The notes beneath the pieces are model-generated. The model searched no databases and had not been told where the DNA came from. It saw only the letters and a list, made by a program, of their open reading frames with translations. 64,000 nucleotides of DNA. Source: Macrostomum lignano. Lineage: Eukaryota. Position numbers and translations under genes: made by a program. Below are positions 22,101 through 45,184 of the stretch, piece after piece. The stretch is taken from the NCBI GenBank assembly GCA_002269645.1, contig NIVC01000600.1:124001-188000 (forward strand), in the 5' to 3' direction. How positions within the stretch are numbered: position 1 is the first letter of the stretch; each line of letters opens with the position of its first letter.

Positions 22101-25100
22101 CAAAGCAACTAGCAATCTGAATTTGGAGACTGACTGGGCTGCTATTCTAAACATCTGCGATCTGATTCGACAGCAGGATGTGAAGTAAGCCTGACTATAA
22201 ATCATCAGAACTCAGAAAAAATATTTATAGACACTTGAAATATTTCTGGTGAAAATATCCATCCAACCTGATCATTTTTTACAGTGCCAAATATGCTGTC
22301 AGTGCAGTGCGCAAGAAGCTGTGCCACGACAATCCCCACACTGTATTCTATGCTCTTCAGGTGAGCTAGTTGAACATTTTGTTCTTTTATATTGCACATA
22401 GATATGATGTCATTAGGAATACGAGTACAACTTGCCATAAAATATCATTTTAGACTGTTGAAGCCATGGTGAAGAACTGCGGCAATCCAGTCTACGACGA
22501 AGTTCTCACAGTGGAATTTCTTGATCTATTGAAAGAATTGTCCAAGGTTAGTCCGTTGGAGGACAAGTATTGACTCTGAGAAGACATAGACATGTACACA
22601 CAATCGCATACAGGGCCTGTGCAATGCAGTCTACATACAGGTTTATGTTTTTACAATGCTTTTTAGAGTCAAGATCCGGTGAAAGAGAAAGTGCTGGAAC
22701 TAATCCAGATCTGGGCCTCTGTGTTCTCCAACCAGTCCCGCTATCGCTGCATCCAAGATGTGTTCTCGTCGCTCAAGCGGGAGGGTGAGTCCTCAATTGA
22801 CGTGTATTAAAAATTTGTATTTTGGATATGCTTAATTATTGTGCAAAAATGTTAGTTGAACTTGCAACTGATAGAAAGCATGATGATAAAAGCAACAAAT
22901 GAAACTTAATACTCCCTAGCCTTCCTTGGGATTTATTTGGTAATCTTAGGCTTCCTTGATTGTGTAGTTTTTCTGGCTCTAAGGTACTTGTCTCCGCGTC
23001 CAGAGCCTCGATTTTCGTTCTGGTGTCCTAGCAGCGACTCTTGTCAGCGCCCGCCATCAAACACTACTCGTATCAGCGAGTCTCTTGTCAGCGCCCGCCA
23101 TCCAATACTACTCGTATCAGCGAGTCTCTTGTCAGCGCCCGCCATCCAGCACTACTCGTATCAGCGAGTCTCTTGTCAGCGCCCGCCATCCAACACTACT
23201 CGTATCAGCGAGTCTCTTGTCAGCGCCCGCCATCCAACACTACTCGTATCAGCGAGTCTCTTGTCAGCGCCCGTCATCCAACACTACTCGTATCAGCGAG
23301 TCTCTTGTCAGCGCCCGCCATCCAACACTACTCGTATCAGCGAGTCTCTTGTCAGCGCCCGTCATCCAACACCACTCGTATCAGCGAGTCTCTTGTCAGC
23401 GCCCGCCATCCAGCACTACTCGTATCAGCGAGTCTCTTGTCAGCGCCCGCCATCCAATACTACTCGTATCAGCGAGTCTCTTGTCAGCGCCCGCCATCCA
23501 ATACTACTCGTATCAGCGAGTCTCTTGTCAGCGCCCGCCATCCAGCACTACTCGTATCAGCGAGTCTCTTGTCAGCGCCCGCCATCCAATACTACTCGTA
23601 TCAGCGAGTCTCTTGTCAGCGCCCGCCATCCAACACTACTCGTATCAGCGAGTCTCTTGTCAGCGCCCGCCATCCAACACTACTCGTATCAGCGAGTCTC
23701 TTGTCAGCGCCCGCCATCCAATACTACTCGTATCAGCGAGTCTCTTGTCAGCGCCCGCCATCCAGCACTACTCGTATCAGCGAGTCTCTTGTCAGCGCCC
23801 GCCATCCAACACTACTCGTATCAGCGAGTCTCTTGTCAGCGCCCGCCATCCAACACTACTCGTATCAGCGAGTCTCTTGTCAGCGCCCGCCATCCAATAC
23901 TACTCGTATCAGCGAGTCTCTTGTCAGCGCCCGCCATCCAGCACTACTCGTATCAGCGAGTCTCTTGTCAGCGCCCGCCATCCAACACTACTCGTATCAG
24001 CGAGTCTCTTGTCAGCGCCCGCCATCCAATACTACTCGTATCAGCGAGTCTCTTGTCAGCGCCCGCCATCCAACACTTATTGGCGAGTCTCCTGTTTAAC
24101 ATCTGCTCTGTAATTAACCCCACATCTTTGACCAAGCACTCCCAATCGCTTCGTTCAAACTTTTTGGGTATTTCAGCCGAAAGTAATGTGACAAACTACT
24201 AATATCGTCGTAAATTATAGACATCCATTAGTGAAATGAAGCCACCCCAAACATACTCTGCCATGCCATTTCCACCCTTCGCTGCCTGCACGCAGGCCAT
24301 TCCTTTCCCGCCGTCCGGTCCTCCGACGCGATGTTCGAAGCCGAAGCGGCCCCAGAATGGAAGGAGGGCTCCCTGTGCCATAAGTGCCGCGCCCAGTTCA
24401 CCACGTTCCGGCGCAAGCACCATTGCCGCTCCTGTGGCAACATATTTTGCGACGAATGCTCTGATAAACGGTCCATCATACCGCGTTTCGGAATCGAGAA
24501 AGAGGTTCGCGTCTGCAAGGCCTGTTATGACGAGATCAATCGGTGAGACAAGCTAGCTTATTTTCGGAAACTTTTATAAGGCACAATAATTATAAATTAT
24601 CGGCTTACCCTAAGACATTGTCCATTTCAACAATTCCCCTTAGTCCTTGACCATTTGAGCAATTCCCTTGAGTCTTTGGCCATCTAATCATTTCCCCTTG
24701 AGTCTTTGGCCATCTAATCAGTTCCCCTTGAGTCTTTGGCCATCTAATCAGTTCCCCTTGAGTCTTTGGCCATCTAATCAGTTCCCCTTGAGTCTTTGGC
24801 CATTTAATCAGTTCCCCTTGAGTCTTTGGCCATCTAATCAGTTCCCCTTGAGTCTTTGGCCATCTAATCAGTTCCCCTTGAGTCCTTGGCCATTTGAGCA
24901 ATTCCCTTGAGTCTTTGGCCATCTAATCAGTTCCCCTTGAGTCTTTGGCCATCTAATCAGTTCCCCTTGAGTCTTTGGCCATCTAATCAGTTCCCCTTGA
25001 GTCTTTGGCCATCTAATCAGTTCCCCTTGAGTCCTTGGCCATTTGAGCAATTCCCTTGAGTCCTTGTCTATCTTATCAGTTCCCCTTGAGTCCTTGACCA

Positions 25101-28100
25101 TCTTATCAGTTCCCCTTGAGTCCTTGTCTATCTTATCAGTTCCCCTTGAGTCCTTGTCTATCTTATCAGTTCCCCTTGAGTCCTTACCATCTTATCAGTT
25201 CCCCTTGAGTCCCTTGTCCATCTAATCAGTTCCCCTTGAGTCCTTGGCCATTTGAGCAATTCCCTTGAGTCCCTTGTCCATCTAATCAGTTCCCCTTGAG
25301 TCCTTGACCATCTTATCAGTTCCCCTTGAGTCCCTTGTCCATCTAATCAGTTCCCCTTGAGTCCTTGACCATCTTATCAGTTCCCCTTGAGTCCTTGTCT
25401 ATCTTATCAGTTCCCCTTGAGTCCTTGACCATCTTATCAGTTCCCCTTGAGTCCTTGTCTATCTTATCAGTTCCCCTTGAGTCCTTGACCATCTTATCAG
25501 TTCCCCTTGAGTCCCTTGTCCATCTAATCAGTTCCCCTTGAGTCCCTTGTCCATCTAATCAGTTCCCCTTGAGTCCCTTGTCCATCTAATCAGTTCCCCT
25601 TGAGTCCTTGTCCATCTGAACGATTCGCTTGAGTTCTTTTCCATCTGAGCGATTCCCTTCGAGTCCTTGACAATATAATCAGTTACCCTTGAGTCATGTC
25701 CATCTGAGCAATTCCCCTTCAGTCCTTCAATGTTTCTGCAATTACTACAATTTTACTCGTAGATCGACGCTAAGTTCGATTTATTTCCAAATCGAGCATA
25801 TATTGATGTGCAATTTTCATATTACTGACTTGCTACTAACAGTTCCCAGATCAGTAGTACCCGCAACATGTCTTTAAAATTTATATTTTAAGCGTCGTGT
25901 CGCAGTCGCCCGCCCTAGTAGAACCTGGCGTTGCTAAGCAACGGCAGCGCCAGTCCAGATCGATATCGGCTGTGACGGCGGCCCACTCCAGCGATCAGTG
26001 GCATAAAAGCCGAAGAACTCGGTTGCTAATGCTAATTCTGGAATCTGTTCACTTGTTGTAGTTTGAAATCGCATTTTTTAAAACTAGTTTGTTTTGTTTG
26101 AAGTTTCCAGTTCAAAGCAGCGTCAAGTTGCAAATAGTTGTATCGTTCTAGGCCACCAAGGCGCACAGAGTGTAAATGAGAAAGTCTGGGCCGCTGTACA
26201 TGTACATCCTGTGTGAGCGCCAGCTCGTGCGTCAGTGAAATGGAATAGGTCAATTTGCGGAAAAATCTCCTTTAACTTGAAGCTAGCCATCCCATTCGTA
26301 AGCCGCTTATTTTTCCTCTCCTTGGCAGGTCCTCCAGTGCGGATTCGAACAGATACGATGACCGATCCGAAGCCGAGGCCAAGGTGAGCGAGACAGTGCG
26401 CATATCAGTCAGTATCAGCCTGTACTTAATGTCCAGGGGGTTGTAGCCTACTGGTTTACGACTTGAAGGTCGGGGGTTCGATTCCCCATCCCACTCGGTA
26501 AAATGGGTGCCAGCATTAGCTGTGGTAATTGAGGATGTGTGTGACGACCCCCCCAGTCCTTGGACTGAACAGCCGTACGCAGTCTACAGATGCGACTGAG
26601 CTATCGGTTGCACGTTGGCCCAATTGGAGCAGGTTTAGTCAATTATTATTATTATTATTATTACTATTACGAGTACTTAATATCCACTTTTCCTAATGCT
26701 GATATTGAAAAGTGGCACCTTTTTCCCCACTACAATGCTGACACTACAAAGTGGCACCTGTAAGGTTTAGCGAATTTGTAACAAAGGCCACTAGATTGGT
26801 TGCGGTTGCGCAATCAAGTTACATTTTGATTTGACAGCTGTGGAACCTAGGCACATGTGTAAAATGATTTATTACAATTTCTGTCGGTTGTCACTGTAAA
26901 CTCAAAATTGCTCCAATCCTACATTCAAAGGGCCCCTCTGAAGATCCTCAAGTGAGCAATAAAAATAATTTATTTCCATTTGCTCGGTTAACTGGCTTGC
27001 ATTTTTATAATTTGCGGTCGGAACAGTTCTATTCTACATGATACTACTACTAGTAGCTAAAATCGGCTGCTAAAATAATGCCACACTTATTGCTTTGAAT
27101 GTTGTAGTGCAAAATCTCTATAATTTGGCTGCTTTCTAATAATTCATAATTATTACTTAATTAGCTAATTCCGCTGCTTTAACAATTAAGAGTATTTTTG
27201 TATTTTTTATTGCAGCCGGCAATCTAACATTAACTGTAAAATCAAGCATGCATTCCTAATGTACATTTAATGTGCATACTCAGGAAGCACATGTGTACAT
27301 TTGGTTTGACATATAGATCACCTCTCTCTCTCCCTCTCTCTCCCTGTCTTCCACCTCTTCTCTACTGTTTTGAGTCTCACTTGCTCCGTACAAATATTTC
27401 AACTTGTGGAAGGACTCAGTGCCATGTTTTTAATCTGCATTACAGCTTAACACAATGATTGAGTCAAACGCTAGATAAAATACCATACTCTGGTTTATTA
27501 TTATTATTAGATGAACAAGGACAAGGAGAGGGAACTGGAATTGCGAGAGAAGGAGGAACTGGAATTAGCTCTGGCCTTGAGCGCCTCCGAGGCTGAATCT
27601 AAGACCAATCAGGTAAGTTATTAATGCGCTGCCGTGTTTCTCTGTTGCTATGCTAGTGGTTTTTCAGGCCTTTTTAATCTTCATTTTCTTTTGATTAGAA
27701 CTTTTGCCAAAATATAAAGAGATTTGTGTTCGCTGTCATTCTAGGGTATGAGATTTCTGTGCGCTGTCATATTCTAGGGTATGAGATTTCTGTGCGCTGT
27801 CATATTGTCATATTCTAGCGGGAGGGATTTCTGTCTTATCGGACGTTACCGAGCAGTCATATCCCCAATTATTTCCCATATCTTCCCTCAGCGCTCCAAG
27901 CCACGCCAGCAGCAGGCGGCTGCCAGCGGCTCACCTTCGGCTGCTCCTGCGGGCTCAGGCGGGGGTCTGTACTCTAAACTGGACACGTCCGGCATGGACC
28001 CCGAATTGGTGGTGTATCTGGATCGGAACTACTGGGAGAAGAGAAGGCGCGACGGTCAGCAACAGGAGGCTCAAGCAAGCGCCGGAGTTTCCAAGGCGAC

Positions 28101-31100
28101 AACTGCGACAGCTGGGACGGCTGCTACTGCGGCTGCGGCTTCTTTCACTGTTGCTTCTTCTCAGGAGCAGTCAGCTGTGCAGAAAGGCGGACAGACCAAC
28201 GTAAGTAATTTTTTCTTAGGAAATAAATCTACATTTTACTTTTTAATTCGTCAATAGCGAACTCTTCTGATTCTTTCTAATGTAACGCATTCGGCGTAGC
28301 TTTATTTTTGAACATGACATACTTTTTAGTCTACTTAAAGTAGAAAGTAAAGCATCTTTGCTCTATTTTTTGCTTGCAAATTGCTGCAAACTAAATTATT
28401 GTACACACAGTGCACGGAATGAGTGAGTAGTCTGTTTGTTTAAAGCCTGCCGAATGAAGAATGCAAACTGTGCAGCGACTAAGGAAATATGAAATACCTT
28501 ACCTATCTACGTCACTCTACATGTAAACTGATAATGGAATTTCCTTGCTGAGCAACAAGATTTACTCTAGCTAGCATGGGGAGGTAAAACAGGGTCAACC
28601 TTGGCAAGTCAGCTAACTTGTGTGGCGTAGTGAATGAATGACTTGAGTGGCGGGCTTTGCAAAGCAGAGCGCATATAGCATATAGCATGATATATGCGTC
28701 ATGCGTGCGACTGGCAAACTGGCGCTAGCGTAGCAATTTCAACACCCTGCTGGCCTTAGCCTTGGTTCATGGGTTTTCGCATTTTTTGGATCAAAGTAAA
28801 AAATCGATTACCCCTTTAATCCTAACTTTTCTGGTTTCGCGCCATCTGCTTTCGGTTTCACCTAGTTAATAGAATTCCCAAGTATGACTAACGACTTGTT
28901 GAAACAGAACAGGCGGAAATGCAAGCCGGCATACATTTCGTACAGTCAGTCGCTCTCTGTGCATCATGCCTTAATTTGTTAACAGTTGCCTGTCTCTTCC
29001 AACTTGCTATAGTTGTCTCCGCTTATGTGTGAAATTGGGCGATGCGCAATTTCGGTTCAGATTTGAATTGATTTTGTTATAATTAGAAATCCTTCCTAAC
29101 TAGTGAATGAAGACGCTGTCGTCTTCAAAGGTGGGACGATGGTTTATATTGTGTCCATTATTGTTTATGGCTATGACATCTATTTATTTAACCTAAATTG
29201 AGAGCTAAAAAGCCCCCCACGCTCCTGGCATTAGTTAGTCTAGTGGTATAGTGGGGGACTGGCCGCCCCCCACGCCCCTGGCATTAGTTAGTCTAGTGGT
29301 ATAGTGGGGGCTGGCCGCCCCCACGCCCCTGGCATTAGTTAGTCTAGTGGTATAGTGGGGGGCTGGCCGCCCCCACGCCCCTGGCATTTGTTAGTCTAGT
29401 GGTATAGTGGGGGGCTGGCCGCCCCCACGCCCCTGGCATTTATTAGTCTAGTGGTATAGTGGGGGCTCGCCGCCCCCCACGCCCCTGGCATTAGTTAGTC
29501 TAAGTGGTATAGTGGGGGGCTGGCCACCCCCACGCCCCTGGCATTAGTTAGTCTAGTGGTATAGTGGGTGGCTGGCCGCCCCCCACGCCCCTGGCATTAG
29601 TTAGTCTAGTGGTATAGTGGGGGCTGGCCGCCCCCCACGCCCCTGGCATTAGTTAGTCTAGTGGTATAGTGGGGGGCTGGCCGCCCCCCACGCCCCTGGC
29701 ATTAGTTAGTCTAGTGGTATAGTGGGGGGCTGGCCGCCCCCCACGCCCCTAGCATTAGTTAGTCTAGTGGTATAGTGGTATAGTGGGGGGGCTAGCCGCC
29801 CCCCACGCCCCTGGCATTAGTTAGTCTAGTGGTATAGTGGGGGGCTGGCCGCCCCCACGCCCCTGGCATTAGTTAGTCTAGTGGTATAGTGGGGGGCTGG
29901 CCGCCCCCACGCCCCTGGCATTAGTTAGTCTAGTGGTATAGTGGGGGGCTGGCCACCCCCCACGCCCCTGGCATTAGTTAGTCTAGTGGTATAGTGGGGG
30001 CTGGCCACCCCCCACGCCCCTGGCATTAGTTAGTCTAGTGGTATAGTGGGGGGCTGGCCGCCCCCACGCCCCTGGCATTAGTTAGTCTAGTGGTATAGTG
30101 GGGGGCTGGCCGCCCCCACGCCCCTGGCATTAGTTAGTCTAGTGGTATAGTGGGGGGCTGGCCGCCCCCCACGCCCCTGGCATTAGTTAGTCTAAGTGGT
30201 ATAGTGGGGGCTGGCCGCCCCCCACGCCCCTGGCATTAGTTAGTCTAGTGGTATAGTGGGGGCTGGCCGCCCCCACGCCCCTGGCATTAGTTAGTCTAGT
30301 GGTATAGTGGGGGGCTGGCCGCCCCCACGCCCCTGGCATTAGTTAGTCTAAGTGGTATAGTGGGGGCTGGCCGCCCCCACGCCCCTGGCATTAGTTAGTC
30401 TAGTGGTATAGTGGGGGCTGGCCACCCCCACGCCCCTGGCATTAGTTAGTCTAGTGGTATAGTGGGGGGCTGGCCGCCCCCCACGCCCCTGGCATTTATT
30501 AGTCTAGTGGTATAGTGGGGGGCTCGCCGCCCCCACGCCCCTGGCATTAGTTAGTCTAAGTGGTATAGTGGGGGGCTGGCCGCCCCCACGCCCCTGGCAT
30601 TAGTTAGTCTAGTGGTATAGTGGTATAGTGGGGGCTGGCCGCCCCCACACACCTGGCATTAGTTAGTCTAGTGGTATAGTAGGGGGCTGGCCGCCCCCAC
30701 GCCCCTGGCATTAGTTAGTCTAGTGGTATAGTGGGGGCTGGCCGCCCCCACGCCCCTGGCATTAGTTAGTCTAGTGGTATAGTGGGGGGCTGGCCGCCCC
30801 CCACGCCCCTGGCATTAGTTAGTCTAAGTGGTATAGTGGGGGGCTTGCCGCCCCCCACGCCCCTGGCATTAGTTAGTCTAGTGGTATAGTGGGGGCTGGC
30901 CACCCCCACGCCCCTGGCATTAGTTAGTCTAGTGGTATAGTGGGGGCTGGCCGCCCCCACGCCCCTGGCATTAGTTAGTCTAGTGGTATAGTGGGGGGCT
31001 GGCCGCCCCCCACGCCCCTGGCATTAGTTAGTCTAGTGGTATAGTGGGGGGCTGGCCGCCCCCCACGCCCCTGGCATTAGTTAGTCTAAGTGGTATAGTG

Positions 31101-34100
31101 GGGGGCTGCCGCCCCCACGCCCCTGGCATTAGTTAGTCTAGTGGTATAGTGGGGGGCTGGCCGCCCCCCACGCCCCTGGCATTAGTTAGTCTAGTGGTAT
31201 AGTGGTATAGTGGGGGGCTAGCCGCCCCCCACGCCCCTGGCATTAGTTAGTCTAGTGGTATAGTGGGGGGCTGGCCGCCCCCCACGCCCCTGGCATTAGT
31301 TAGTCTAGTGGTATAGTAGGGGGCTGGCCGCCCCCACGCCCCTGGCATTATTAGTCTAGTGGTATAGTGGGGGCTAGCCGCCCCCCACGCCCCTGGCATT
31401 AGTTAGTCTAGTGGTATAGTGGGGGCTGGCCGCCCCCCACGCCCCTGGCATTAGTTAGTCTAGTGGTATAGTGGGGGCTGGCCACCCCCACGCCCCTGGC
31501 ATTAGTTAGTCTAGTGGTATAGTGGGGGGCTGGCCACCCCCACGCCCCTGGCATTAGTTAGTCTAGTGGTATAGTGGGGGGCTGGCCGCCCCCCACGCCC
31601 CTGGCATTAGTTAGTCTAGTGGTATAGTGGGGGCTGGCCGCCCCCCACGCCCCTGGCATTAGTTAGTCTAGTGGTATAGTGGGGGGCTGGCCGCCCCCCA
31701 CGCCCCTGGCATTAGTTAGTCTAAGTGGTATAGTGGGGGCTGGCCGCCCCCCACGCCCCTGGCATTAGTTAGTCTAGTGGTATAGTGGGGGCTGGCCGCC
31801 CCCCACGCCCCTGGCATTAGTTAGTCTAGTGGTATAGTGGGGGGCTGGCCGCCCCCACGCCCCTGGCATTAGTTAGTCTAAGTGGTATAGTGGGGGGCTG
31901 GCCGCCCCCACGCCCCTGGCATTAGTTAGTCTAGTGGTATAGTGGGGGGCTGGCCACCCCCACGCCCCTGGCATTAGTTAGTCTAGTGGTATAGTGGGGG
32001 GCTGGCCGCCCCCCACGCCCCTGGCATTTATTAGTCTAGTGGTATAGTGGGGGGCTCGCCGCCCCCCACACACCTGGCATTAGTTAGTCTAGTGGTATAG
32101 TAGGGGGCTGGCCGCCCCCACGCCCCTGGCATTAGTTAGTCTAGTGGTATAGTGGGGGCTGGCCGCCCCCACGCCCCTGGCATTAGTTAGTCTAGTGGTA
32201 TAGTGGGGGCTGGCCGCCCCCACGCCCCTGGCATTAGTTAGTCTAAGTGGTATAGTGGGGGGCTTGCCGCCCCCCACGCCCCTGGCATTAGTTAGTCTAG
32301 TGGTATAGTGGGGGCTGGCCACCCCCACGCCCCTGGCATTAGTTAGTCTAGTGGTATAGTGGGGGCTGGCCGCCCCCCACGCCCCTGGCATTAGTTAGTC
32401 TAGTGGTATAGTGGGGGGCTGGCCGCCCCCCACGCCCCTGGCATTAGTTAGTCTAGTGGTATAGTAGGGGGCTGGCCGCCCCCACGCCCCTGGCATTTAT
32501 TAGTCTAGTGGTATAGTGGGGGCTGGCCGCCCCCACGCCCCTGGCATTAGTTTCTCTAGTGGTATAGTGGGGGCTGGCCGCCCCCACGCCCCTGGCATTA
32601 GTTAGTCTAGTGGTATAGTGGGGGCTGGCCGCCCCCCACGCCACTGGCATTAGTTAGTCTAGTGGTATAGTGGGGGCTGGCCGCCCCCACACCCCTGGCA
32701 TTAGTTTCTCTAGTGGTATAGTGGGGAGTTGGCCGCCCCCACGCCCCTGGCATTAGTTTGTCTAGTGGTATAGTGGAGGGCTGGCCGCCCCCACACCCCC
32801 GCTCCCCCACCCCTCCGCGCGTTGTTGTTGGGGAGGGTGGTTGTTGTTGTGGGGTTTGCGTAACGTGGGGGCTGCCGCCCCCACACCCCCGCTCCCCCAC
32901 CCCTCCGCGCGTTGTTGTTGGGGAGGGTGGTTGTTGTTGTGGGGTTTGCGTAACGTGGGGGCTGCCGCCCCCACACCCCCGCTCCCCACCCCTCCCGCAC
33001 ATTGTTGTTGGGGAGGGTGGTTGTTGTTGTGGGGTTTGCGTAACGTGGGGGCTGCCGCCCCCACACCCCCGCTCCCCCACCCCACCCCTCCGCAACTTTT
33101 CCCACCTCTAACACATCTTTTTAGCATGCTAAAACTGCTTGTAAGCCTTTGGCGACCGCGCAACACATGATACTTGCCGATATGTATCGTAATATTCTTT
33201 CTGCACTAACAAATCATCTGTGCCGCACTTTCAGCTTCACTCTTACTCTTTAATAAGGTATACAAGGAAAGGAAAATTAAACAATCAATATTAAATTATA
33301 TTCAAGTGAAAGAGAATTGAAAATACTAATAAATCCGTTCCTGCTAAAAAATTAAATATAAAAAAAACTTGGCCCACTTGGGATTCGAACCCGTGTTTAG
33401 GCCATTTACAAAGCAACTGCCTTCGGCCCCGATCCATCTCTTACTTAAGCGAAGCTCTACAGTGCACGCCGTTTATATCGAATATTCCCTATGGTAGCCA
33501 CTTTTACGATTTTTGCTGCTTTTTCATACATTTCTGCTCGCTGCATCGCAGCGCCTTCATCTAAAAATGCGAGTCGCATGTCGTTACAGAGATAACATCA
33601 AGGCGCATTCATCTAATGCATTTTTAAAGTATGTCAACAAATTTTACGCCTCCTAGGCGCCAAATTGTGCATTTTCACCTGTTCTGACAGGTATTCAAAC
33701 AGGTATTAAGACCTATTAACTTAAGAATCAGTTTTCAAAACTAATTTAGTTGCACAGTGCATCCATAGTGCTGTTTTTAGACACCAAAATTGAGTCTCTA
33801 GGCCTTGCCAATGCAGAGTTATTAGCAAAAGTATGCTCAAAATTTGCCCAAAAATAGCCTTCTCAAAATTCGGAGCCAATTTTCTCAAAAATACGAATTT
33901 TCCAGCCATATTGGCGTATGACCGGTGTAACTTCATCTATTCGACTAAACAATATTGAAAATGCAGAAAAATCGGTGCGCAAAATTTCTTATTTTTCCAC
34001 TTCAAAGTTTGTACCCCAAAATGGGCCGTTTTTCACTTAACAGGTAAAAAGTACCTGTTAACAGGGGTTTTTTCAGGAGTGTCTTATGTCATTCAAAAGG

Positions 34101-37100
34101 GCATCCGATGGGCTACAATTTGACGCCATACTCGAAAAACTTTGCCCCATTTTAAAAAAATTTCCTTAACAACGTCTGATTTTCTGCAGTGCCCCCCGGC
34201 CTCTTTTTTCCCTGGTTTTCGGGTCACTGCTCAGCACAGGTAGGTCCAAATGCTTAGAAAATTTAGGAAAACAAATTTCCATATGTTTGACACATCGTGT
34301 TAAAGTCTCACCACTGTAGCATAAAACACTTTTTCAAGTTTGAGGACTACTTTTTTAAAACGTGACCCAATTTTTTGAAAATGTCGTTTTTAGGCACTCT
34401 TTGGCACCTGGGCAGGTTATTGATGGCCCAATAAGCCAAATCTCGATGTTTCCGAATAGAAGACATCTATTTGAGTAATTTGGTGTAGAAATATTAAAAA
34501 ATAAAGTTTTTAATCTCGACGAGATAGGCCTCACAAAAGTGCACTAAAAATTTGTACTTTTAAAGTGCAGATAGGCAGCCATGTGAAAAGTACATTTTAG
34601 CCCTAAAAACTATAGCGCATCAAACAGCCCCAGGTGTTATTGACGCTATGAGGCAGCTCAAAGGCCGCGCTATCGCGCGTCCTTTTCGCTGCGGTGAGGC
34701 AAAGTTGGAAAAAATGCCAATTTTTCGACCTCAAAAAACACGTTTTTTGTACTTTTAGCCTAGACGTTAAAGTACAATAAAAAAATCCATTTCTGATCAT
34801 TGTAGCGTTCGAATGCCCGCGTTTACTGAGCCAGCCCGCTAAGCGCTGCCATATTCTCAATCCTTATTTTTTGAGATCAAAGTTTTTGACAAAGTCGAAA
34901 AAACGCAGTTTTTGGTTGCCATGGCAACCAAAACGCATTGCCATGGCAACCAACTATTGTGCATCCGATAGCGCTAGGTCTTTGACACATTTTGGCAAAA
35001 ACCGTTTGTAAATTGGTCGTACCGTTTTTTATTGGCAGCGTTTAAAAGTTGAAAAACGTCATTTTTAGTGTGTGCAACCACGTTACATCTTATCAGGGAC
35101 GATTTCGCAAAAGTAAGCACCATAGAAAAAAATTCTCGCTTCGCTCGCCTTTTTTTCTATACTACTTACTGGCTCATCGTCCCACAACAAGTTGGGTTGG
35201 GGTGGGTAGTGGGCGCGGGCTTATTTGAGACAGGAATCACAGGATTGACTAATTTAAACACATTTTAACTTAAGATAGAAAATGCCTTCTAGATAAGAAA
35301 ATATATAATGGGGTTGCGGGCCGTATGGCTGGTGCTGGCTGGGGATGGTTTGGTTCGCCAGTTGCGTTGTAAAACGCCACCGGAACGAACAACCCCAAAC
35401 CCGATTGAAAATGTAAAGTTATATAGAAAATGACTGGAACGGAATTGGAAAGGGATAGAGGGGTTTGGGGGTGAAGAAAGGACACGACGGGCACAGCGAA
35501 AACTTTGCCCCGATGCTGTCCGTGGGCCAGCCCCTCCTCTCTGTCCTTAATAGTTAGGGGACTTGTCGCCCGCGTACATTTTGGCTTAACGCGGCTGAAC
35601 CAGCCCCCCCCCCAAGCCCTTTGCAGGTCACCAAAAAGACCTCATTTTCGCCATTGGCTCCGTCTGACTCAGCTCCTTTCATTCCCTTCCTTCCAAGTCT
35701 AAACCAAACCTTCTCCCTCCTGATAGCGATGGGGTGGCGGGTTTCGGGGGGGGGGGGGTATCCGACACTTCCAATTATAGGCTGACCCATCCCACCCCCT
35801 CAGCTTTCAGCGCATGTGTGCGCGGGGGGCACCGAAATTGGTCCGTCCGACCCGCGAAATTCATCCATAGAAAGAAGCCTTAGTGCTTGCTTGCGACTGG
35901 CTGAACTGACTTTTAAGAGTCAAGACCCAAACATGCTGTAAATGCGAATACAGCCGGGACAGCAGGCAGTCTGGCATATAGCTTTACCTTACCACTGTGC
36001 GAATGCCACCTCTTGTGTATAAACAACAACTTATTTAGCTAAACTGACTGTAAGACACTGAGCGTCGAACTGCAGCACATCGCGCTTGCTTAATAAAAAT
36101 TTCACGATTCTGTAATTCGCTACCTCGGCAATGAGTCTTGGCGACGGCGTTTACGTCGACGGCAGCTGGGAGTTGAGCATCTTAGTTGATGATTTGCAAT
36201 TAACTCGCCGACTGCGCGTCAACGGCGAGACTCACATAGGCGGCCTGATGCTTCGCTTAGTTGAAGCCATCGACGTGCGAATGGACTGGTCAGATCACGG
36301 CCTGTGGTGGCCGGCGCATAATCGTTGGTTATTAAAAACTCGGCACACCCTTGATCAGTGCGGAGTGCAAGCCGACGCTAAACTGGAATTCCATCGGATG
36401 CACGGCTACGCTCGAGTTCAGCTGCCCGACTTGCAGGAAATAGAAATGCGCCTCAGCTTTGCTCAAACGGTATTTGCTGTTGTAGTTTCCGCCTGTCGAG
36501 AGCTCGGCATCCGTCACCCCGAGGAGCTCTCGTTGCAGGCCGACGGACTTCAGGGCGCCGCGTCTTGCGATGGTAACAACGGCGACAGCGGGGACAGCAG
36601 TAGCGGCAGTCTGCTTCGGACTGGCCATAAAAAGAAGAGCCCGTCGAGTCCGATGCGACCCTCGCCGAGTCCTCGATCGGCCGCTTCGCTTGGCAGCCTC
36701 GGTGGCAGCCTAGGCGACTGCATCGACGGCGGCGGCAGCGTGGCCACCCTGGCTGACAGTCCGAGAGTGAAGGCGACATCGACAGCTTCGCCGCGTCACC
36801 AGCGCGGCAATCGGCGGCCTCCTCGCACGCCGTTAGAACGGGCGGTGGCCAGCGGTGTAGAGTCCTGGCTTGACTCGTCCCGCAGCCTGATGGAGCAGGG
36901 GCTGCGACCCTGCGGCGACAGCTTGTCTAGCGGGCCATTGAGGCTTCGCTTTAAATTTCACGCTCACTACGATTTGAATCCTCAGCTGGACGCTGTTCGC
37001 ATTAACCAGCTGTACGAGCAGGCGAAGTGGTCAGTGCTGATTGGCGAGCAGCAGTGCACGGAGGAGGAGGCCATGTTGTTAGCCGCACTGCAGCTGCAGG

Positions 37101-40100
37101 CCCAGCTTGGCGCCAGGCCAAACGAACCGGCTGCGGGCTCCGCCGGTTCGGCTTTGAACGAAGCCTCGGCGCTGGTTATGCCGTCGTCGAATCTGGCAGA
37201 TGCGGATGCTCAGCTCGATGCTGAGATCGACGCCGACCTTGCCCAGCTGGAGGCGTCGCTGTCTTTGTCTCCAACGTCGGCTTCTGACGGTGTAGCACCG
37301 TCGGTAGTGGCTTCGACGATCGGACGAAGCGGCGCGGCCAGCGCGCCAATAGAAGCCGTGCCCGAGCTGGCCAGCTGGTTGAAGGTCTCCTCAGGCGGCA
37401 GCGGAGGCGGCGTGTTCGCCACGCTGACGCTGCGTGGCGGCGCCGATTCAGGCAAGCGGCGCTATTTGATTTTGCGCGAACTCCAGTTGCTGGTCTGCTC
37501 GGACGATACCGAGGCTGGCCGAACTGAGCCCGTGGCCGAGCTGTCTCTGGCCGGCGCCGAGGTCATGCCGGACACTGCTGGCGGCCGCCTTTCGATTCGC
37601 TTGCTGCCGTCGTCTGGCTCTTCAACTGGCTGGTGGCGGCTGAAATTCGGCGGCGATAACGCCAGGCGGCAGTTCGCCGAATGGTCGGCCGGTCTGAGCC
37701 TGGCCGCGCGAGGCCGAACCCTGGCCAGCCAGGACCTGTTCACCGCCGAGGTGCGAGACATCCTGGCCCGTCTGGAGCTCCAATGTCCAACTATCGCCGC
37801 AGTGTCCGAAGCGGCTGAGCTATCCGCGGAGGAAGTCGTCGAAAACCTGGATCCGACCGACTACTTGCCGCCGGCCGTGTTGAAAAGCGGCGGCAAGCCT
37901 CGGGCTTTGGCCAGGCAGATTCTGGAGCGCCGAGCCCGCGTCCTTGATCGCAGCCGCCTTGACGCTAAGCTGGATTACATCCGGGCCTGGCAGCGTCTGC
38001 CAATGTCGGGCGTGACTTATTTTTGCGTCTATTATAGCGAGCAGCAGCCCGGAGCTCCCGTCAGCTTCGACGATTTCCGTCGCGAGCGCCGACAGCAGAA
38101 GAAGCAGAACCGGCGTCCAGACCTGTTCGGCGTGGCTTTCAATCGGATTATGCGGCTGAACCCGCTGACTGGCGACGCGCTGGCCACCTGGCGCTATCAC
38201 GAGCTGGACTCCTGGACAGTGAACTGGGAGATGATGAGCTTGAGTGCCAGCTTGAACCGGCCGCCGCACTACATGTGCCTGACCCCGTGTCCCAGCAACC
38301 CGGCTCTGAAGCTGAACGTGTGCAAAACCCTAGCCGAATACATTGGCGGCTACGTGTTTCTCAGTCTGAGAAAGCCGGAGAAAAGTCAGCTGCTCGACGA
38401 GCGAATGTTTCAGAAGCTCACCTGCGGCAGGGACGCGGTTTCCGCTTGAAGCACGGGCCAGATGGCAGATGGTTTTGTTGTGCTAGATCGATTATTCGAT
38501 ATCTTCTAGAAGCAGGTCCAGCAATATCGGACTAACTGATCAATGCGTTACAGTCCAGAGATTTTTAATGCAGTTCTGTTTATGGGCTTTGCCTTTGCTT
38601 ATGGCTTGGCTTTTTATGTTGTTTTTTTCAGTTCGAATTGGCGCCTTTTTAAATCAAATACTATATTAGTACATGCATTATTATGGTTCTGCTAATCTCC
38701 ACTTGATATTTGTGCTGTTTTATAGAATCGCGCAAAACTAATTTGGTTTATTATTTTATTAATTTAGACATTCGAAACTATTGTGCAGTCTCGGCATTAG
38801 GAATACGCGCTTAAGTGGAGAAATCGTTGCATATTGTTTTTATTCATTTTTTAATTTTTGGTATTATATAGTATGCATATGGTCAATGGGTATTATTATG
38901 CTGTACATACATTTGCATTAAACGTACCCTCTGCTCTGCTATCGTCCTGATCGAATCTTTTTTTGCTTAACAAACGTTTTGCTTTTGTATTACCAGTGGA
39001 TAACATTATAATATATACATTGATAGTAAAATTTAAAAAATTAGTAATTTCGTGCACGCTTAGCCACTTTTGTGTTTCTTTCATTTAACGTACTTAATAA
39101 AAATACCTGCTGTTAGTTTTCACGACCAGGTGCTCAAGTCAGAGATTATTCTCTGACTTAAGTCTTATTGACAGTCTAAAGGACTAGCGGGATCTCAGGA
39201 CGTCTCAGGACCAGCAGGATCTTATCTCACTCAGGTCTAAGGACCAGCAGGATCTTATCTCACTCAGGTCTAAGGACCAGCAGGATCTTATCTCACTCAG
39301 GTCTAAGAACCAGCAGGATCTTATCTCACTCAGGTCTAAGGACAGGGGGATCTCACTCAGGTCTAAGGACAGGATCGAGGATCTCACCCAGGTCTAAGGA
39401 CAGCGGGATCTCACCCAGGTCTAAGGACAGGGGGATCTCACTCAGGTCTAAGGACAGGAGGATCTCACCCAGGTCTAAGGACAGGGGGATCTCACCCAGG
39501 TCTAAGGACAGGGGGATCTCACTCAGGTCTAAGGACAGGAGGATCTCACCCAGGTCTAAGGACAGCGGGATCTCACCCAGGTCTAAGGACAGCGGGATCT
39601 CACCCAGGTCTAAGAACCAGCAGGATCTCACTCAGGTCTAAGGACAGGGGGATCTCACCCAGGTCTAAGAACCAGCAGGATCTCACTCAGGTCTAAGGAC
39701 AGGGGGATCTCACCCAGGTCTAAGAACCAGCAGGATCTCACTCAGGTCTAAGGACAGGGGGATCTCACCCAGGTCTAAGAACCAGCAGTATCTCAGTCAG
39801 GTCTAAGGACAGGGGGATCTCACCCAGGTCTAAGAACCAGCATGATCTCACTCAGGTCTAAGGACAGGGGGATCTCACCCAGGTCTAAGAACCAGCAGGA
39901 TCTCACTCAGGTCTAAGGACAGGGGGATCTCACCCAGGTCTAAGAACCAGCAGGATCTCACTCAGGTCTAAGGACAGCGGAATCTCACCCAGGTCTAAGA
40001 ACCAGCATGATCTCACTCAGGTCTAAGGACAGGGGGATCTCACCCAGGTCTAAGAACCAGCAGGATCTCACTCAGGTCTAAGGACAGCGGAATCTCACCC

Positions 40101-43100
40101 AGGTCTAAGAACCAGCATGATCTCACTCAGGTCTAAGGACAGCGGGATCTCACCCAGGTCTAAGGACAGCGGGATCTCACTCAGGTCTAAGGACAGGGGC
40201 ATCTCACCCAGGTCTAAGAACCAGCAGGATCTCACTCAGGTCTAAGGACAGGGGGATCTCACCCAGGTCTAAGAACCAGCAGGATCTCACTCAGGTCTAA
40301 GGACAGCGGAATCTCACCCAGGTCTAAGAACCAGTAGGATCTCACTCAGGTCTAAGGACAGGGGGATCTCACCCAGGTCTAAGAACCAGCAGGATCTCAC
40401 TCAGGTCTAAGGACAGCGGAATCTCACCCAGGTCTAAGAACCAGTAGGATCTCACTGGAGGTTGCAGAAAATCATTGATCGAAGTTCATCAATCGCATCT
40501 ATTTGCTACTCCAGGATAATTTCGTAGTGCACAGAAGCAAGGTTGCCTGTGCAGATACTTGTACTGCTTCTGCGCAAGTGTCCCATTTTTGCGACAGCCG
40601 CTTCGCTTGGCCTCGTCTAAAGAGATTTTCAACTGCAACTGTAATCCAAGAGCTTTTCCGCAGCAAAGTAGCAAATTGGGGGCTGAAATATTTCTATACG
40701 GCGCTGGGCGTTGACTTTCGTTCAATACTCGTATAATAATAATAATAATAAAAGTAGGTCCCCAGAAAGGCCTCAGTAGAAATAGCTGGCACTTGTTTAC
40801 CCTGCGTCCAATTCTGTGGATACTGTGGGCAGGCAGGCAGGCAGCGAAAAGGACCAGGCTAAACGCGAAAGTTTTAGCTCGTATCGGGCAAGAGCCATCT
40901 CTCTTTCGGCTTTCCTTCTAGATGCAAGGAGAGAGGGAGATAGAGACGGGTGCATGCGGGGTTATCCCCCGAATCTTTGCAACTTTCTGCAGCGTGCGCA
41001 CTTTCATCGGCGTCTCTATTCTATCCCATGTCTAAATCCCTAAACACTCTGCCGAGGTCCTGCGGCTCCTGCCCGGCTTTGGCCTTAATTTGCCAAGCAT
41101 AAAGAATAGAAAAATTAATGATGGAATTTGTGTGTTTCCTATTATTATTGCATTCTAATGGCTCCAGACCAGCTCAGTTCTGGAGTGTCTAGCCAGCCCA
41201 GATCTAAAGTGTCTATCCAGCCCAGATCTAGAGTGTCTAACCAGCCCAGATCTAAAGTGTCTATCCAGCCCAGATCTGGAGTGTCTAACCAGCCCAGTTC
41301 TCTCTTTCATCGGCCTGTTGATGAGTTAAAGAAATCTAGGCTGGGAAACTATAGTTGCACTTTTAAGTGCTCCCCCTTCCCACAGTTGAGCCTGCAGAAC
41401 CGATCATTGCGGCTAATGCCCTCTGCGCATTTCTCGACTCCCAAACTGGTTTTGCCGGGACTTTCCGATCGAATTCGCTTCCTCTTGCTAATCTCGACTG
41501 CCTCCGTTCGGCTGCTGAGCAATTATATCCCAGCTCCGATTGGTAGCTTCGATGCCGGCTGCCTCCGTTCCCTCACGCTGTGTCGCCATGGCTTTTAAAA
41601 ATGCCAGAGTCCATCCTATCCGCAGGCATCCGAGCGATGGCCACTTGCACTTTAAACAAATGGGGTAGAATTTCAGATCCAACATACTGTACATTGCAAA
41701 ACTGACAACATGATTAATGAGCATATCGGCAATTGCTAGACAACTGTTTGTAGATGTCAGCATTTGCCTACAAACTGTGTCTAGCAAGTTTTCCTGTGGC
41801 TGAAAACATCTAACCAAAATGGGAACAACAGTTGAACCCCGCTCCGCCATCTATCCAAGTCTCAGCTTCCCAACCGTGCTTCCACTGTGTGTGTGTGTGG
41901 GGGGGGGCAAATTGACGCAGAACAATTGATGAAGATCGCATTTATTAGTCCTAGTTATTTGCCAATTTTATAGGCTCTATATTTTTCGGAGTTCTTGTAT
42001 CAACTGCATAAAATGCAGTTATTTTTTAAACAACGAATGAGACAAATATCAGGCTTAAAACGCGATGACACTACTGAATTGTAAGTAGCATAATTAGCGC
42101 CAATCTCGGTGAACACGCGCAACAATTCAGGGCGAATCGGCCGGGCTTGGCAAAGACGAGGACGCCGGGCCTCGCGAGGAATTCCTCCGCGCTCTGGCCA
42201 GCAGCATCGAGATCTTCGTCAACCGGATGAAGGCCGACAGCGTACGCGGCCGCAGCGTTGCAGCCGACGGCACCGTCCAGACGCTGTTTATGACCCTCAA
42301 CCAGATGCACCCGCAGCTCATCGAGCACATGAACCGGGTCGAGGCCCGGCGCAACATTCTGGAGGAGCAGCAGGACAAACTGGCCAGACTGAGGGACGCT
42401 CGAGAGGCGTTGAACGCCCTGCGAGATGAGCACGAGCAGAGGCGCAAGGCTGAGCAGCAGGAGCGGGAGAAGCAGCGATTCGCTCAGATGATGATCAAAC
42501 TGGAGGAGATGCGCCAGAAGAAGCATGTAAGGCCAGCCCATGTTTTTTGTGTGCAACTTTGAATTGACATTTGACTGCCAGTGACATTTGACTGCCAGTT
42601 ACATTTGAATTGTCAGTGACATTTGACTGCCAGTGCCATCTGACTGTCAATGACAATTGTCACCGCCATTAATGGCAATCATACGTGCCGATATGTATCG
42701 AAAAAAACGTGTTTCTCGTTCCGCCTGACAGGAGTTCATGGAGTACCAGCGCCAGCTGCAAATCCAACAGATGGAAGCCCAGCGCCGGGAATTCGAAATG
42801 CGAATGGAGGCGCAGAAGCAGCGCCAGGCAATGGAGCAGTACAAGCAGCAGTTCCCCTATTCGAGCGGCGCCTACCAGCAGCAGTTCGTCCCCCAGCCTG
42901 GGCAGCCCGGGCCTCAGCCGCCAGCTTCAAGCGGTGGCTACGCCATCCAGTACCCGCCGGGCTATCCAGTCCAGCAGCAGCAGCAGCCGCCGCCGCAGTC
43001 AGTCGCTAGTAGCGCCGGTTATTCGCTGCCGCACTCTGCTGCTTCGACTGATCCGTCTGCCCAGTACATGTACCACATGCAGCAGCAGCCACCCAGCTCT

Positions 43101-43352
43101 GATGCGCAATATTCCACTGCTCCGATGTCGCTGCCGCCTCAGCATCATCCCCAGCAGCAGCAGCAATATTCTCAGCACCAGCCTCAGCAGCAGCAGCCTT
43201 CGTACACCTATGCTCAGCAGTATCAGCAGCCGCAGCAACAGCCGCAGCAGCAGCCGCAGCAATACCAGCAGCCTCAAGTGACATCGTCGGATCCTCAGCA
43301 GCAGCAGCAGCAGCAGCAACAATCTGACGAAGCTCAATTGATCCAGTTTTGA
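16142..43352 (+). CDS. HGS: HGS/Hrs (ESCRT-0), 11 coding exons: 16142-16190, 22100-22184, 22285-22360, 22454-22546, 22667-22784, 24296-24542, 26329-26383, 27511-27612, 27892-28200, 42131-42526, 42732-43352; 716 aa
   Basis: VHS domain (KATSNLNLETDWAAILNICDLIRQ...VKNCG), FYVE (RKHHCRSCG...VRVCKACY), UIM (EELELALALSASEAE), DPELVVYLDRNYWE, GAT/coiled coil (FVNRMK...MHPQL...QDKLARLRDAR), Q/P-rich tail and terminal LIQF. All ten introns are GT-AG and phase-consistent; the exon 9-10 junction gives QTN|GES, matching the conserved NGES. Confidence 0.95.
17300..17790 (+). repeat. Dispersed AT-rich repeat, copy B (in HGS intron 1)
   Basis: Collinear homology with 13110-13590. Confidence 0.8.
19240..20685. 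repeat. About 1.4-kb cryptic polypyrimidine (CT-rich) low-complexity tract in HGS intron 1
   Basis: Almost purine-free on the + strand; source of the Leu/Ser ORFs 19246-20776. Confidence 0.95.
21400..21925. mobile_element. Putative non-autonomous Helitron/Helentron-like (HINE/DINE-type) element
   Basis: The AAAGTTTGGTGTAATTTGGTTGAGCAGTTTGGGAG segment followed by a (CA)n microsatellite and GATTTTTATAGGTAGAGAT resembles the architecture of such elements. Termini not defined. Confidence 0.35.
23035..24078. repeat. 44-bp minisatellite (TCGTATCAGCGAGTCTCTTGTCAGCGCCCGCCATCCAACACTAC)n in HGS intron 5, about 23 copies
   Basis: Highly homogeneous direct copies varying mainly at the CCA(A/G)(C/T)AC position. 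Confidence 0.97.
24630..25720. repeat. 30-bp minisatellite (TTCCCCTTGAGTCTTTGGCCATCTAATCAG)n in HGS intron 6
   Basis: Direct copies; variant blocks change along the array. Confidence 0.95.
26434..26670 (+). mobile_element. tRNA-derived SINE-like element in HGS intron 7
   Basis: A-box-like TAGCCTACTGG, B-box GGTTCGATTCC, body GTAAAATGGGTGCCAGC and an (ATT)n tail at 26641-26670. Confidence 0.6.
29205..32765. repeat. About 52-bp hairpin satellite (CCCCACGCCCCTGGCATTAGTTAGTCTAGTGGTATAGTGGGGGGCTGGCCG)n, about 68 copies, in HGS intron 9
   Basis: Period 51-53; each unit has a GGGGGC-TGGCC-GCCCCC stem-loop and a CTAG. Confidence 0.97.
32766..33095. repeat. About 82-bp repeat, 3-4 copies, sharing the GGGGGCTGCCGCCCCC hairpin with the adjacent satellite
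   Basis: Repeated CGTAACGTGGGGGCTGCCGCCCCCACACCCCCGCTCCCCCACCC and GTTGTTGTTGGGGAGGGTGG blocks. Confidence 0.9.
33096..35165. mobile_element. Putative non-autonomous DNA element body (Helitron/Helentron-like) adjoining the hairpin satellite
   Basis: Non-coding and contiguous with the hairpin repeats; has a reverse B-box-like GGGATTCGAACC near 33380, a 24-bp palindrome at 34910-34933 and CTCGCTTCGCTCGC near 35136. No transposase or Rep ORF. Confidence 0.3.
36131..38449 (+). CDS. FERMT: Kindlin / fermitin family protein, single coding exon, 772 aa, nested in HGS intron 9
   Basis: F0: [10 protein letters not shown]...[26 protein letters not shown]...WLLKT..[15 protein letters not shown]. F1: [12 protein letters not shown]. 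F2: [12 protein letters not shown]...LRFKF...[23 protein letters not shown]...[13 protein letters not shown], split by a PH domain. F3: TWRY...WTVNWE...[16 protein letters not shown] at 39096-39101. Confidence 0.96.
   Translation: [772 protein letters not shown]
39185..40460. repeat. 27-29-bp minisatellite (GGATCTCAC[TC]CAGGTCTAAG[G/A]AC...)n, becoming an alternating ~55-bp dimer from about 39600
   Basis: GGACAGGGG-type and GAACCAGCA-type units alternate; period 55 measured (39601, 39656). Confidence 0.95.
41165..41300. repeat. 24-bp minisatellite (CCAGCCCAGATCTARAGTGTCTAW)n, about 5 copies
   Basis: Direct reading. Confidence 0.85.
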
Positions 43353-44139
43353 AGAACCGATTGCAAAGACAGAAACAATGATGCATAAACTTGTCTTATT
43401 ATTTATTGTTATACAGAATACCGAAAAAGTTTCGCAGTGTCATAACAGAATTTTTAACTCCAGATACCCCCCTGTTCCTCTCTTTAGCCACTCTCCTATA
43501 ATCTTCAGAAGCAAAAATTTTGATTTTTTCAAGTCGATACTCAGTAATACATTTCACTTCACTGAGGAGAATTGTTCTGTAATTTAAATTCGCGCTCTTT
43601 AACCATAATACTACTTCTATTAGTAGTTTAACCAGCTTTGCTTATCCAGTCTTACGCTTGCTACTCCTTTTTTAATAATCTCTTCATATAACCTTGTCTG
43701 ATGTACAAGGAGAAGCTTAAAAAATGTTGTGAAAGGTTTTTAATGAAAATAGCATAACAAAATCTTTGTCTGTAGTAGGCCAGCTTTGCACAACAATATT
43801 AATATCTGGTCTTTTGATCCTAGGCAATCCTATGGAAAATAAGCAAATGCTTTTTGCTTTTCTTGCGTCATTTATATGCCATATGTAACCTAATTAATTA
43901 TTATAGTAGCGTGACTCAATTCAGATGGAGAGATGCATAATTAATTAACATTTATAATTAAGAAGACAAATATAATACAGCGGAATGCACTGCCCAGTAA
44001 TATACTTTTTGCGTCGCTTTGATTCTGTTACAATCTAGATGTACCTATCGATCGTCATACATTTGTATTTGTGACTTCTGCTCTTCTGAAGATTTTTTAC
44101 AGTTGTCCAGAACATCTGGCATAAAACAGAAGCCAATGT

Positions 44140-44700
44140 GGCGTCAACCAATCAGCATTTACTTAGATTTGGGGTCTGTTCCAATGTGCACTGAATTCAA
44201 CCAATAAGCATCAACTTAGATTTGGGGTCTTTTCCAATGTGCACTGAATTCAACCAATAAGCATCAACTTAGATTTGGGGTCTTTTCCAATGTGCACTGA
44301 ATTCAACCAATAAGCATCAACTTAGATTTGGGGTCTTTTCCAATGTGCACTGAATTCAACCAATAAGCATCAACTTAGATTTGGGGTCTTTTCCAATGTG
44401 CACTGAATTCAACCAATAAGCATCAACTTAGATTTGGGGTCTTTTCCAATGTGCACTGAATTCAACCAATAAGCATCAACTTAGATTTGGGGTCTTTTCC
44501 AATGTGCACTGAATTCAACCAATAAGCATCAACTTAGATTTGGGGTCTGTTCCAATGTGCACTCTGGCGTCAACCAATGAGCATCGACTTTGATTTTGGG
44601 TCTGTTCCAATGTGCAATCTGGCGTCAACCAATCAGCATCGACTTTGATTTTGGGTCTGTTCCAATGTCCACTCTGGCGTCAACCAATCAGCATCAACTT
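44140..44700. repeat. 53-bp minisatellite (CAACCAATAAGCATCAACTTAGATTTGGGGTCTTTTCCAATGTGCACTGAATT)n, about 10-11 copies
   Basis: Direct copies about 0.5 kb upstream of the orphan gene ATG. Confidence 0.95.
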
Positions 44701-45184
44701 TTGTGGGGACGGATAGTCGCACATCAGATACTATCTAAATGTACACTACAGCGGTAATATTATATTGCATAAGTGTAGTGGGGAAAGGTATATAGCACAC
44801 TAAATTTCTTTTGGATTGTACATATTAATACTTTTCTCTTTTAAAAATTTTTTCTTTATCGAGCATCGAAAATAATCGAACGCACTTTTGTCAACACATC
44901 GTTATGCATGCTCGAGCAAATACATATCGATCTATATTTGGAACGCAGCTACTCGTATAGAGCGATACAACCTCTGGCTGCTTCTCCCCAGCCAAGCAGT
45001 TGTGTTTGTCTATGGGCCGAACTATCGACTGTACCTGCGATTGGAGCCGCTTCGGCTCGGCTTATGCCAAGCTAAGTTAGACTGGACTTTCGTGCACTGG
45101 GAAGGTGAGTTTGTTGCAAAGCAGCGAGAATCACATAAAGCAGCGATCGATTGCAAACTGACTAACGAGCCGGCTGCCAAGACC

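Follow-up and report, generated by a model that had tools for sequence, protein, structure and literature searches.

The 64,000-nucleotide stretch of Macrostomum lignano DNA analysed here (positions 124,001 to 188,000 of contig NIVC01000600.1, assembly GCA_002269645.1; hereafter the window) carries a complete kindlin (fermitin) gene. This gene lies wholly inside intron 9 of HGS, the gene of the ESCRT-0 component Hrs, on the same strand and within one HGS transcription unit, an arrangement confirmed by the splice model, the homologues and two further copies of the locus. We consider it likely that the nested kindlin is an old, functional and intron-free gene, most likely expressed as its own mRNA. 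The assembly agrees with the M. lignano genome Mlig_3_7 described in PMC5730564.

The HGS model was built from tblastn searches with HGS homologues combined with splice signals. It contains 11 coding exons for 716 aa, and every intron is GT-AG. The host intron, intron 9 (28201..42130, + strand), is 13,930 nt long. Exon 9 (27892..28200, supported by tblastn and by the deposited protein P0241) ends in …QTN at the donor ACCAAC/GTAAGT (28200/28201), and exon 10 (42131..42526; Pfam, tblastn, P0241) opens with GGCGAATCG, i.e. GES, behind the acceptor ATTCAG/GGCGAATCG (42130/42131); both sites are in phase 0. At this junction the sequence is …YQNGESEE…, …ENGETD… and …QNGDVDE… in HGS proteins from other animals, and no HGS segment is lost between exons 9 and 10. 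The deposited M. lignano protein P0241 (BOX15_Mlig029941g1, 711 aa, encoded on a paralogous contig) is 99% identical to the model and has the same junction, QTNGES. An earlier note on this DNA had proposed a single 13.9-kb intron on the strength of the rebuilt NGES junction; splice signals, phase, homologues and P0241 all bear it out. As to the identity of the host, the model unites VHS, FYVE, UIM and Hrs_helical (exon 10, Pfam E=1.9e-22) with a C-terminal …LIQF, the combination that identifies ESCRT-0 Hrs, and precomputed Pfam assignments of P0241 include VHS, FYVE and Hrs_helical.

The window is the third copy of the locus and was compared with two further contigs of the same assembly (NIVC01…), referred to as L001 and L002. 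Both display the order exon 9, kindlin, exon 10 seen in the window. In both, kindlin falls within a deposited same-strand gene encoding VHS, FYVE and Hrs_helical, and the deposited annotation calls the nested kindlin as a separate gene. The nesting is therefore already visible in the deposited gene calls, though we found no paper describing it, and a literature search on Macrostomum together with kindlin returned none. From 27719 (5' of exon 9) through kindlin to 40456 the three copies form a near-identical block (>99.5%), which in window coordinates corresponds to 27719-29104 plus 35186-40456, i.e. exon 9, kindlin and a satellite. Between 36131 and 39160 there are 0 differences among the three, so that a selection test across these copies is without power. 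The flanks of the block (window 17300-48460 against L001 and L002) are 85-96% identical, giving a mosaic of identities, and in L002 HGS exons 10-11 show 4 amino-acid differences and indels in Q runs. The pattern suggests that duplicated chromosome copies recently underwent gene conversion or recombination with each other, or else that the contigs are chimeric.

The guest gene occupies 36131..38449 (+ strand, stop codon included) as an intronless coding sequence of 772 aa. The open reading frame (ORF), Pfam, PDB and the three contigs agree on it, and the complete sense-strand kindlin announced in the earlier note stands in full. Its N-terminal F0 domain matches Pfam PF18124 Kindlin_2_N (E=3.9e-30, residues 8-91), and FERM_M (E=4.1e-20) covers residues 283-631, an insertion included. 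The best PDB structures are kindlin-2 chains (8tee, E=5e-99), aligned over residues ~3-766 in three stretches with the insertion at ~324-567 unmatched, and PDB chains of kindlin PH domains match residues 442-551 (E=8e-10). The QW-motif Trp of F3 is kept (…SWTVNWE…). By its F0, its PH-split FERM domain and its full-length collinearity, F3 integrin-binding region included, the nested ORF is thus identified as a kindlin/fermitin. Since its N-terminus aligns from residue 1 with the paralogues, and also with kindlin-2, the ATG at 36131 is taken as the start. An exact-protein look-up returned residue-for-residue matches on the three contigs; all hits were genomic, and no RNA-derived contig with the exact protein was among them.

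The PH domain of the nested copy (window 37360-37790, residues ~410-553) is degenerate and scores below threshold against the Pfam PH profile (E=0.001, 20 bits for a threshold of 25.1). The basic beta1-beta2 stretch of the paralogues (…KFFKPKRFTLKNYKRY…) reads …KVSSGGSGGGVFATLTLRGGADSGKRRY… in the nested kindlin. This hints that phosphoinositide binding may be lost or altered. Constraint on the protein is evident: of 141 columns without variation among 15 other kindlins, 118 (84%) are retained in the nested copy, to be compared with 119/141 for P0002 and 109/141 for P0003, the two other kindlins of M. lignano. Its GC content at third codon positions (GC3, 0.71) is like that of other M. lignano coding sequence.

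Neither of these paralogues is nested. P0002 (784 aa) is 45% identical to the nested copy and P0003 (778 aa) 41%; because of these low values the nested copy must be old. A neighbour-joining tree groups the three paralogues, with the shortest branch for P0002 and the longest for the nested copy. The gene of P0003 measures exactly 2337 nt for 778 codons and is therefore intronless, while that of P0002 opens with an exon of 615 codons and has two short introns after it (~113 and ~149 nt), one placed 3 codons away from an intron of the Lingula gene and the other without Lingula counterpart. The intron counts of the three M. lignano kindlins are therefore 0, 0 and 2, for at least 11 in the Lingula gene. 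Intron poverty is thus family-wide in M. lignano and not a mark of the nested copy as a retrocopy of a parent gene with introns, and the reasoning of the earlier note from lack of introns to retrocopy is not well supported. No A-rich or poly(A) tract was found after the kindlin 3' end (past 39101), but this is weak evidence, such marks being expected to have eroded at 45% protein identity. A retrocopy origin of the nested kindlin is weakly supported; an ancient retroposition is possible, whether it involved the nested copy or an ancestor common to all three paralogues. By all these features the nested kindlin is an old, constrained and functional-looking gene.

Part of the length of intron 9 is peculiar to the window. 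An insertion of 6.08 kb (29105..35185; Tandem Repeats Finder) is present in this copy only: L001 and L002 have the empty site …CCTTCCTAAC/AAGTTGGG…, where window position 29104 adjoins 35186. The insertion is made of a 52-nt satellite (68 copies, 29212-32800), three 90-nt repeats (32773-33083) and 2.1 kb of unique sequence, the satellite repeats amounting to ~60% of it. Neither inverted nor long direct terminal repeats were found, nor a further copy of the insertion among the sequences compared. Its junctions show a possible 3-bp AAC duplication, and it is devoid of coding capacity; it may be a mobile element or an expanded satellite. Because these 6.08 kb are inserted only in the window copy, the ancestral intron 9 is ~7.85 kb long, with the kindlin ATG ~1.85 kb 3' of the exon 9 donor. 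A 55-nt satellite array, detected by Tandem Repeats Finder, follows kindlin at 39323..40456. Searches of the intron with Rfam, for tRNAs and for the spliced leader (SL) sequence gave nothing relevant, and the SL sequence is absent from the window DNA.

The expression of kindlin was considered from the motifs at its two ends. The 5' flank (35186..36130, + strand) contains, in this order, four motifs with putative functions: TATAAA, TTATTTAG, CTGCAG and AATAAA. The TATAAA (36018-36023) lies 113 nt 5' of the ATG and predicts a start near 36050. The acceptor-like TTATTTAG (36031-36038) had been put forward in the earlier note as a possible SL acceptor. In M. lignano one 35-nt SL is carried by 30-39% of genes, and ~15% of genes are in operons (PMC8629364, PMC5730564); the enriched trans-acceptor motif is [T/C]TNCAG (PMC8629364). 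TTATTTAG does not fit this motif, so that the proposal is not well supported: CTGCAG at 36070-36075 fits better, though it is without a pyrimidine tract, and the TATAAA at 36018 offers an independent promoter as an alternative. Further [T/C]TNCAG matches 5' of the kindlin ATG are TTTCAG (-320) and TTGCAG (-504). By analogy with the rest of the genome, SL trans-splicing of kindlin is plausible. We also considered the 11-mer TATAAACAACA (36018-36028). The window has a single occurrence, at -113 relative to the nested ATG, and so has the P0002 locus of 22.6 kb (L003 9948-9958, -53 relative to the P0002 ATG), for an expected count of 0.03 per 64 kb. As a shared promoter motif it was dropped, since the alignment of the 300-nt flanks is not significant (25/300 shuffles reach its score).

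Splicing of exon 9 to 36039 gives CTA AAC TGA, i.e. an in-frame stop, as the earlier note had claimed for TTATTTAG. Joining exon 9 to any of the three acceptor-like sites checked 5' of kindlin soon leads to an in-frame stop, and an HGS-kindlin fusion protein is therefore not expected. At the other end, the AATAAA at 39096-39101 closes an AT-rich putative 3' untranslated region (38450..39125, + strand, 33% GC, with the cleavage site predicted). This hexamer is present where the earlier note placed it; it is not a lone one, as the intron has seven sense AATAAA (28222, 33328, 34500, 34776, 36092, 39096 and 40747), so the host must ignore several hexamers anyway. The AATAAA at 36092-36097, 34 nt 5' of the ATG, stands in the same context, CTTAATAAAAAT, as that at 39096. 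It does not form an operon-type pair of poly(A) signal and acceptor, because no AG lies between it and the ATG.

These elements lead us to propose the following scheme. Kindlin would be made as its own mRNA, with a 5' end at most ~100 nt 5' of the ATG at 36131, set either by a TATA-type promoter at 36018 or by a nearby SL acceptor on a short outron of its own, and with a 3' end set by the AATAAA at 39096. Polymerase starting from the HGS promoter would read through kindlin, and removal of the whole 13.9-kb intron, joining 28200 to 42131, would yield the full-length HGS mRNA. The earlier note rightly saw that the kindlin poly(A) site must be skipped if full-length HGS is to be made, and that HGS transcripts using this site would lose the coiled coil (Hrs_helical) and the clathrin box of Hrs; skipping requires read-through and removal of the entire intron. 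Any HGS transcript ending at that site, or spliced into the 5' region of kindlin, would encode only VHS-FYVE-UIM, with a stop within a few codons.

Two other explanations bear on the gene itself. The earlier note had named a mis-join, or a separate gene copy contributing the last HGS exons, as what would undo the nesting. Under this explanation exons 10-11 come from another HGS copy and kindlin has been mis-joined between two partial HGS genes. The assembled genome is indeed partly duplicated and repeat-rich, and the three copies are mosaic (flanks 85-96%, centre >99.5%). We find it hardly credible nevertheless, because the order is identical on three separate contigs and kindlin lies within the span of the deposited HGS model. 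Moreover, the near-identical block runs unbroken from 27719 through kindlin to 40456, the 64-kb window holds one set of HGS exons only, and the deposited HGS model has the same junction. If kindlin had instead entered the HGS intron recently as a processed retrocopy, now perhaps a decaying pseudogene, this would account for a 2.3 kb coding sequence without introns where Lingula kindlin has at least 11, for the longest branch of the three paralogues and for a PH domain under the Pfam threshold. This reading is very unlikely: the 45% and 41% identities to the other M. lignano kindlins contradict a recent event, intron loss is not peculiar to the nested copy (P0003 is intronless and P0002 has two short introns), and no A-rich tract follows the kindlin 3' end. 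In addition the 772-aa ORF is intact, the proportion of kindlin-invariant positions it keeps equals that of P0002, and its GC3 is native.

The more serious competitor concerns the mRNA. Kindlin could be promoterless and cut out of the HGS pre-mRNA, in an operon-like manner, by intronic SL trans-splicing and cleavage at the 39096 signal. The trans-splice site would be e.g. CTGCAG/C (36075/36076) or TTATTTAG/C (36038/36039), in competition with the cis-splicing of intron 9. An acceptor without upstream cis donor suffices for SL trans-splicing, and 30-39% of the genes of this species are trans-spliced and ~15% are in operons, as quoted above (PMC8629364, PMC5730564). Acceptor-like sites lie 55 and 93 nt 5' of the ATG, one of them fitting YTNCAG, and the ancestral spacing from the exon 9 donor to the ATG is just ~1.85 kb. 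Here, however, a strong donor, the GTAAGT of exon 9, does lie upstream in cis, which argues against a purely outron-type acceptor; this donor would be expected to promote cis-splicing to whatever good acceptor follows, and so to compete with the SL. Furthermore TTATTTAG departs from the species motif, the CTGCAG at 36070 has no pyrimidine tract, the TATAAA at -113 is a possible independent start, and the species operon criterion (<1 kb, repeat-adjusted, from the 3' end of the upstream gene) is inapplicable to a nested gene. We therefore hold this release from the host to be unlikely, although it is the likeliest of the alternatives. Its stricter form, in which each HGS transcript yields either full-length Hrs mRNA by cis-splicing or an SL-trans-spliced kindlin mRNA together with a truncated VHS-FYVE-UIM transcript, is more doubtful still.

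The self-standing kindlin unit, with its own start and possibly also SL-capped, appears most likely from the motifs, host-driven release being the minority possibility. Several points weigh against it. A lone TATAAA in a 945-nt flank is a weak signal, with a ~2% chance of occurrence in a 90-nt window. The kindlin 5' end, 3' end and mRNA independence are all read from sequence, and the near-identity of the three copies gives no comparative information on regulatory elements. With 30-39% of M. lignano genes trans-spliced (PMC8629364, PMC5730564), the kindlin mRNA may be trans-spliced too, possibly out of the host pre-mRNA. A search of the supplements of two M. lignano annotation papers found no FERMT or HGS entries, and our literature search on SL trans-splicing of intron-nested genes gave nothing useful.

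The closest conceptual parallel is the cholinergic locus, where VAChT/unc-17 lies in the first intron of ChAT/cha-1 with shared 5' exon(s) and promoter, the two genes being functionally coupled. That arrangement is conserved from nematodes to mammals, and the guest can rely for its expression on transcription of the host and on alternative processing. Both loci have an intron-poor or intronless guest in the same orientation within a host intron; in contrast to the cholinergic locus, the M. lignano kindlin sits in a mid-gene intron, and neither a shared exon nor a shared function is evident. As in the intronic nested genes of human, fly and worm, e.g. the single-exon CHML in OPN3 (PMC3192792), a complete gene is contained in one host intron. 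Among human nested genes ~63% are antisense, ~37% same-strand and 41% single-exon (PMC3192792), so that the emphasis of the earlier note on the rarity of sense nesting is not well supported. Aberrant host transcripts that end too early, through intron retention, forced exonization or cryptic polyadenylation, occur upstream of nested genes, and L1 minigenes served to confirm tandem interference (PMC3192792). The M. lignano pair differs from the catalogued cases (PMC3192792) in its partners, an HGS host and a kindlin guest, in its occurrence in a flatworm with SL trans-splicing, and in being known from sequence alone. The cestode Mesocestoides corti does not share the arrangement, no nested gene being called in its HGS gene.

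With the SL operons of M. lignano, in which one precursor is resolved by SL trans-splicing and polyadenylation (PMC8629364, PMC5730564), the locus shares the same-strand order of its genes and the YTNCAG-type sites 5' of the kindlin ATG. Operon genes are in tandem, with ~100 nt (repeat-adjusted) from the upstream 3' end to the acceptor, whereas kindlin is inside an HGS intron. As for the protein, it has the F0, the FERM domain with inserted PH-like domain and the F3 Trp of the kindlin/fermitin family (FERMT1-3, UNC-112, Fit1/2). It departs from this family as a lineage-specific third paralogue whose diverged PH domain is without the basic beta1-beta2 cluster and whose gene is intronless, the Lingula gene having at least 11 introns.

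The other HGS exons, all on the + strand, are as follows. Exon 1 (16142..16190, donor GTGAGT) consists of MSLFGGKSNSQFDSLL + 1 nt. It is the sole ATG-to-donor candidate whose peptide fits the N-termini of homologues (…SQFDKLL.KATS), and P0241 has the same N-terminus. The VHS domain starts in exon 2 (22100..22184), continues through exons 3 (22285..22360) and 4 (22454..22546) and ends in exon 5 (22667..22784), each placed by tblastn with HGS homologues and GT-AG boundaries. Exon 6 (24296..24542) encodes the FYVE zinc finger (tblastn, 55-60% identity to the FYVE regions of homologues). Exon 7 (26329..26383) is a linker, a frame-keeping GT-AG exon also found in P0241, and exon 8 (27511..27612) carries the UIM, EELELALALSASEAE, located by a motif search and its splice sites. 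The Hrs_helical segment of exon 10 is the STAM-binding coiled coil. Exon 11 (42732..43352; splice model, P0241) encodes the Q/P-rich tail with its clathrin-box-like LIQF end and the stop codon. Other HGS introns (19142-20773, 22937-24202 and 24600-25700) contain tandem repeats that produce spurious low-complexity ORFs of up to 544 codons, which are not genes.

At the 5' end of HGS a TTTCAG, fitting the SL acceptor YTNCAG, ends 26 nt before the start codon (window 16107-16141), and HGS itself may be SL trans-spliced. On the 3' side no AATAAA or ATTAAA was found within 1.5 kb of the stop codon (window 43353-46185). The next same-strand coding region is an ORF from 44888 to ~46185, deposited as a 266-aa gene in L001, whose product lacks any Pfam match. 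A variant poly(A) signal, or co-transcription with this 3' neighbour, is a possibility for HGS. Further away, an ORF on the opposite strand (59172-59951, -) matches Pfam NTP_transf_7, a nucleotidyltransferase (E=5.7e-76), and is an unrelated neighbour. ARAGORN reports a 97-nt 'tRNA-???' with a 4-base anticodon at 11149-11245 (+); Rfam has no tRNA there, and it is probably a false positive.

As a new example of a well-known and common gene arrangement, the locus is of low general interest. It documents a lineage-specific kindlin expansion in a flatworm, with three intron-poor paralogues, one of them with a degenerate PH domain. If release of kindlin from the HGS pre-mRNA were true, such an 'intronic operon' would couple an integrin activator, kindlin, to the ESCRT-0 component that sorts integrins for degradation. 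Transgenesis is possible in M. lignano, which also has SL trans-splicing; with a guest gene nested in sense and a strong cis donor ahead of it, the locus is a clean test case in this species. It would allow the competition of cis-splicing, SL trans-splicing and intronic polyadenylation to be followed on one pre-mRNA, and would reveal whether or not the expression of host and guest is coupled.

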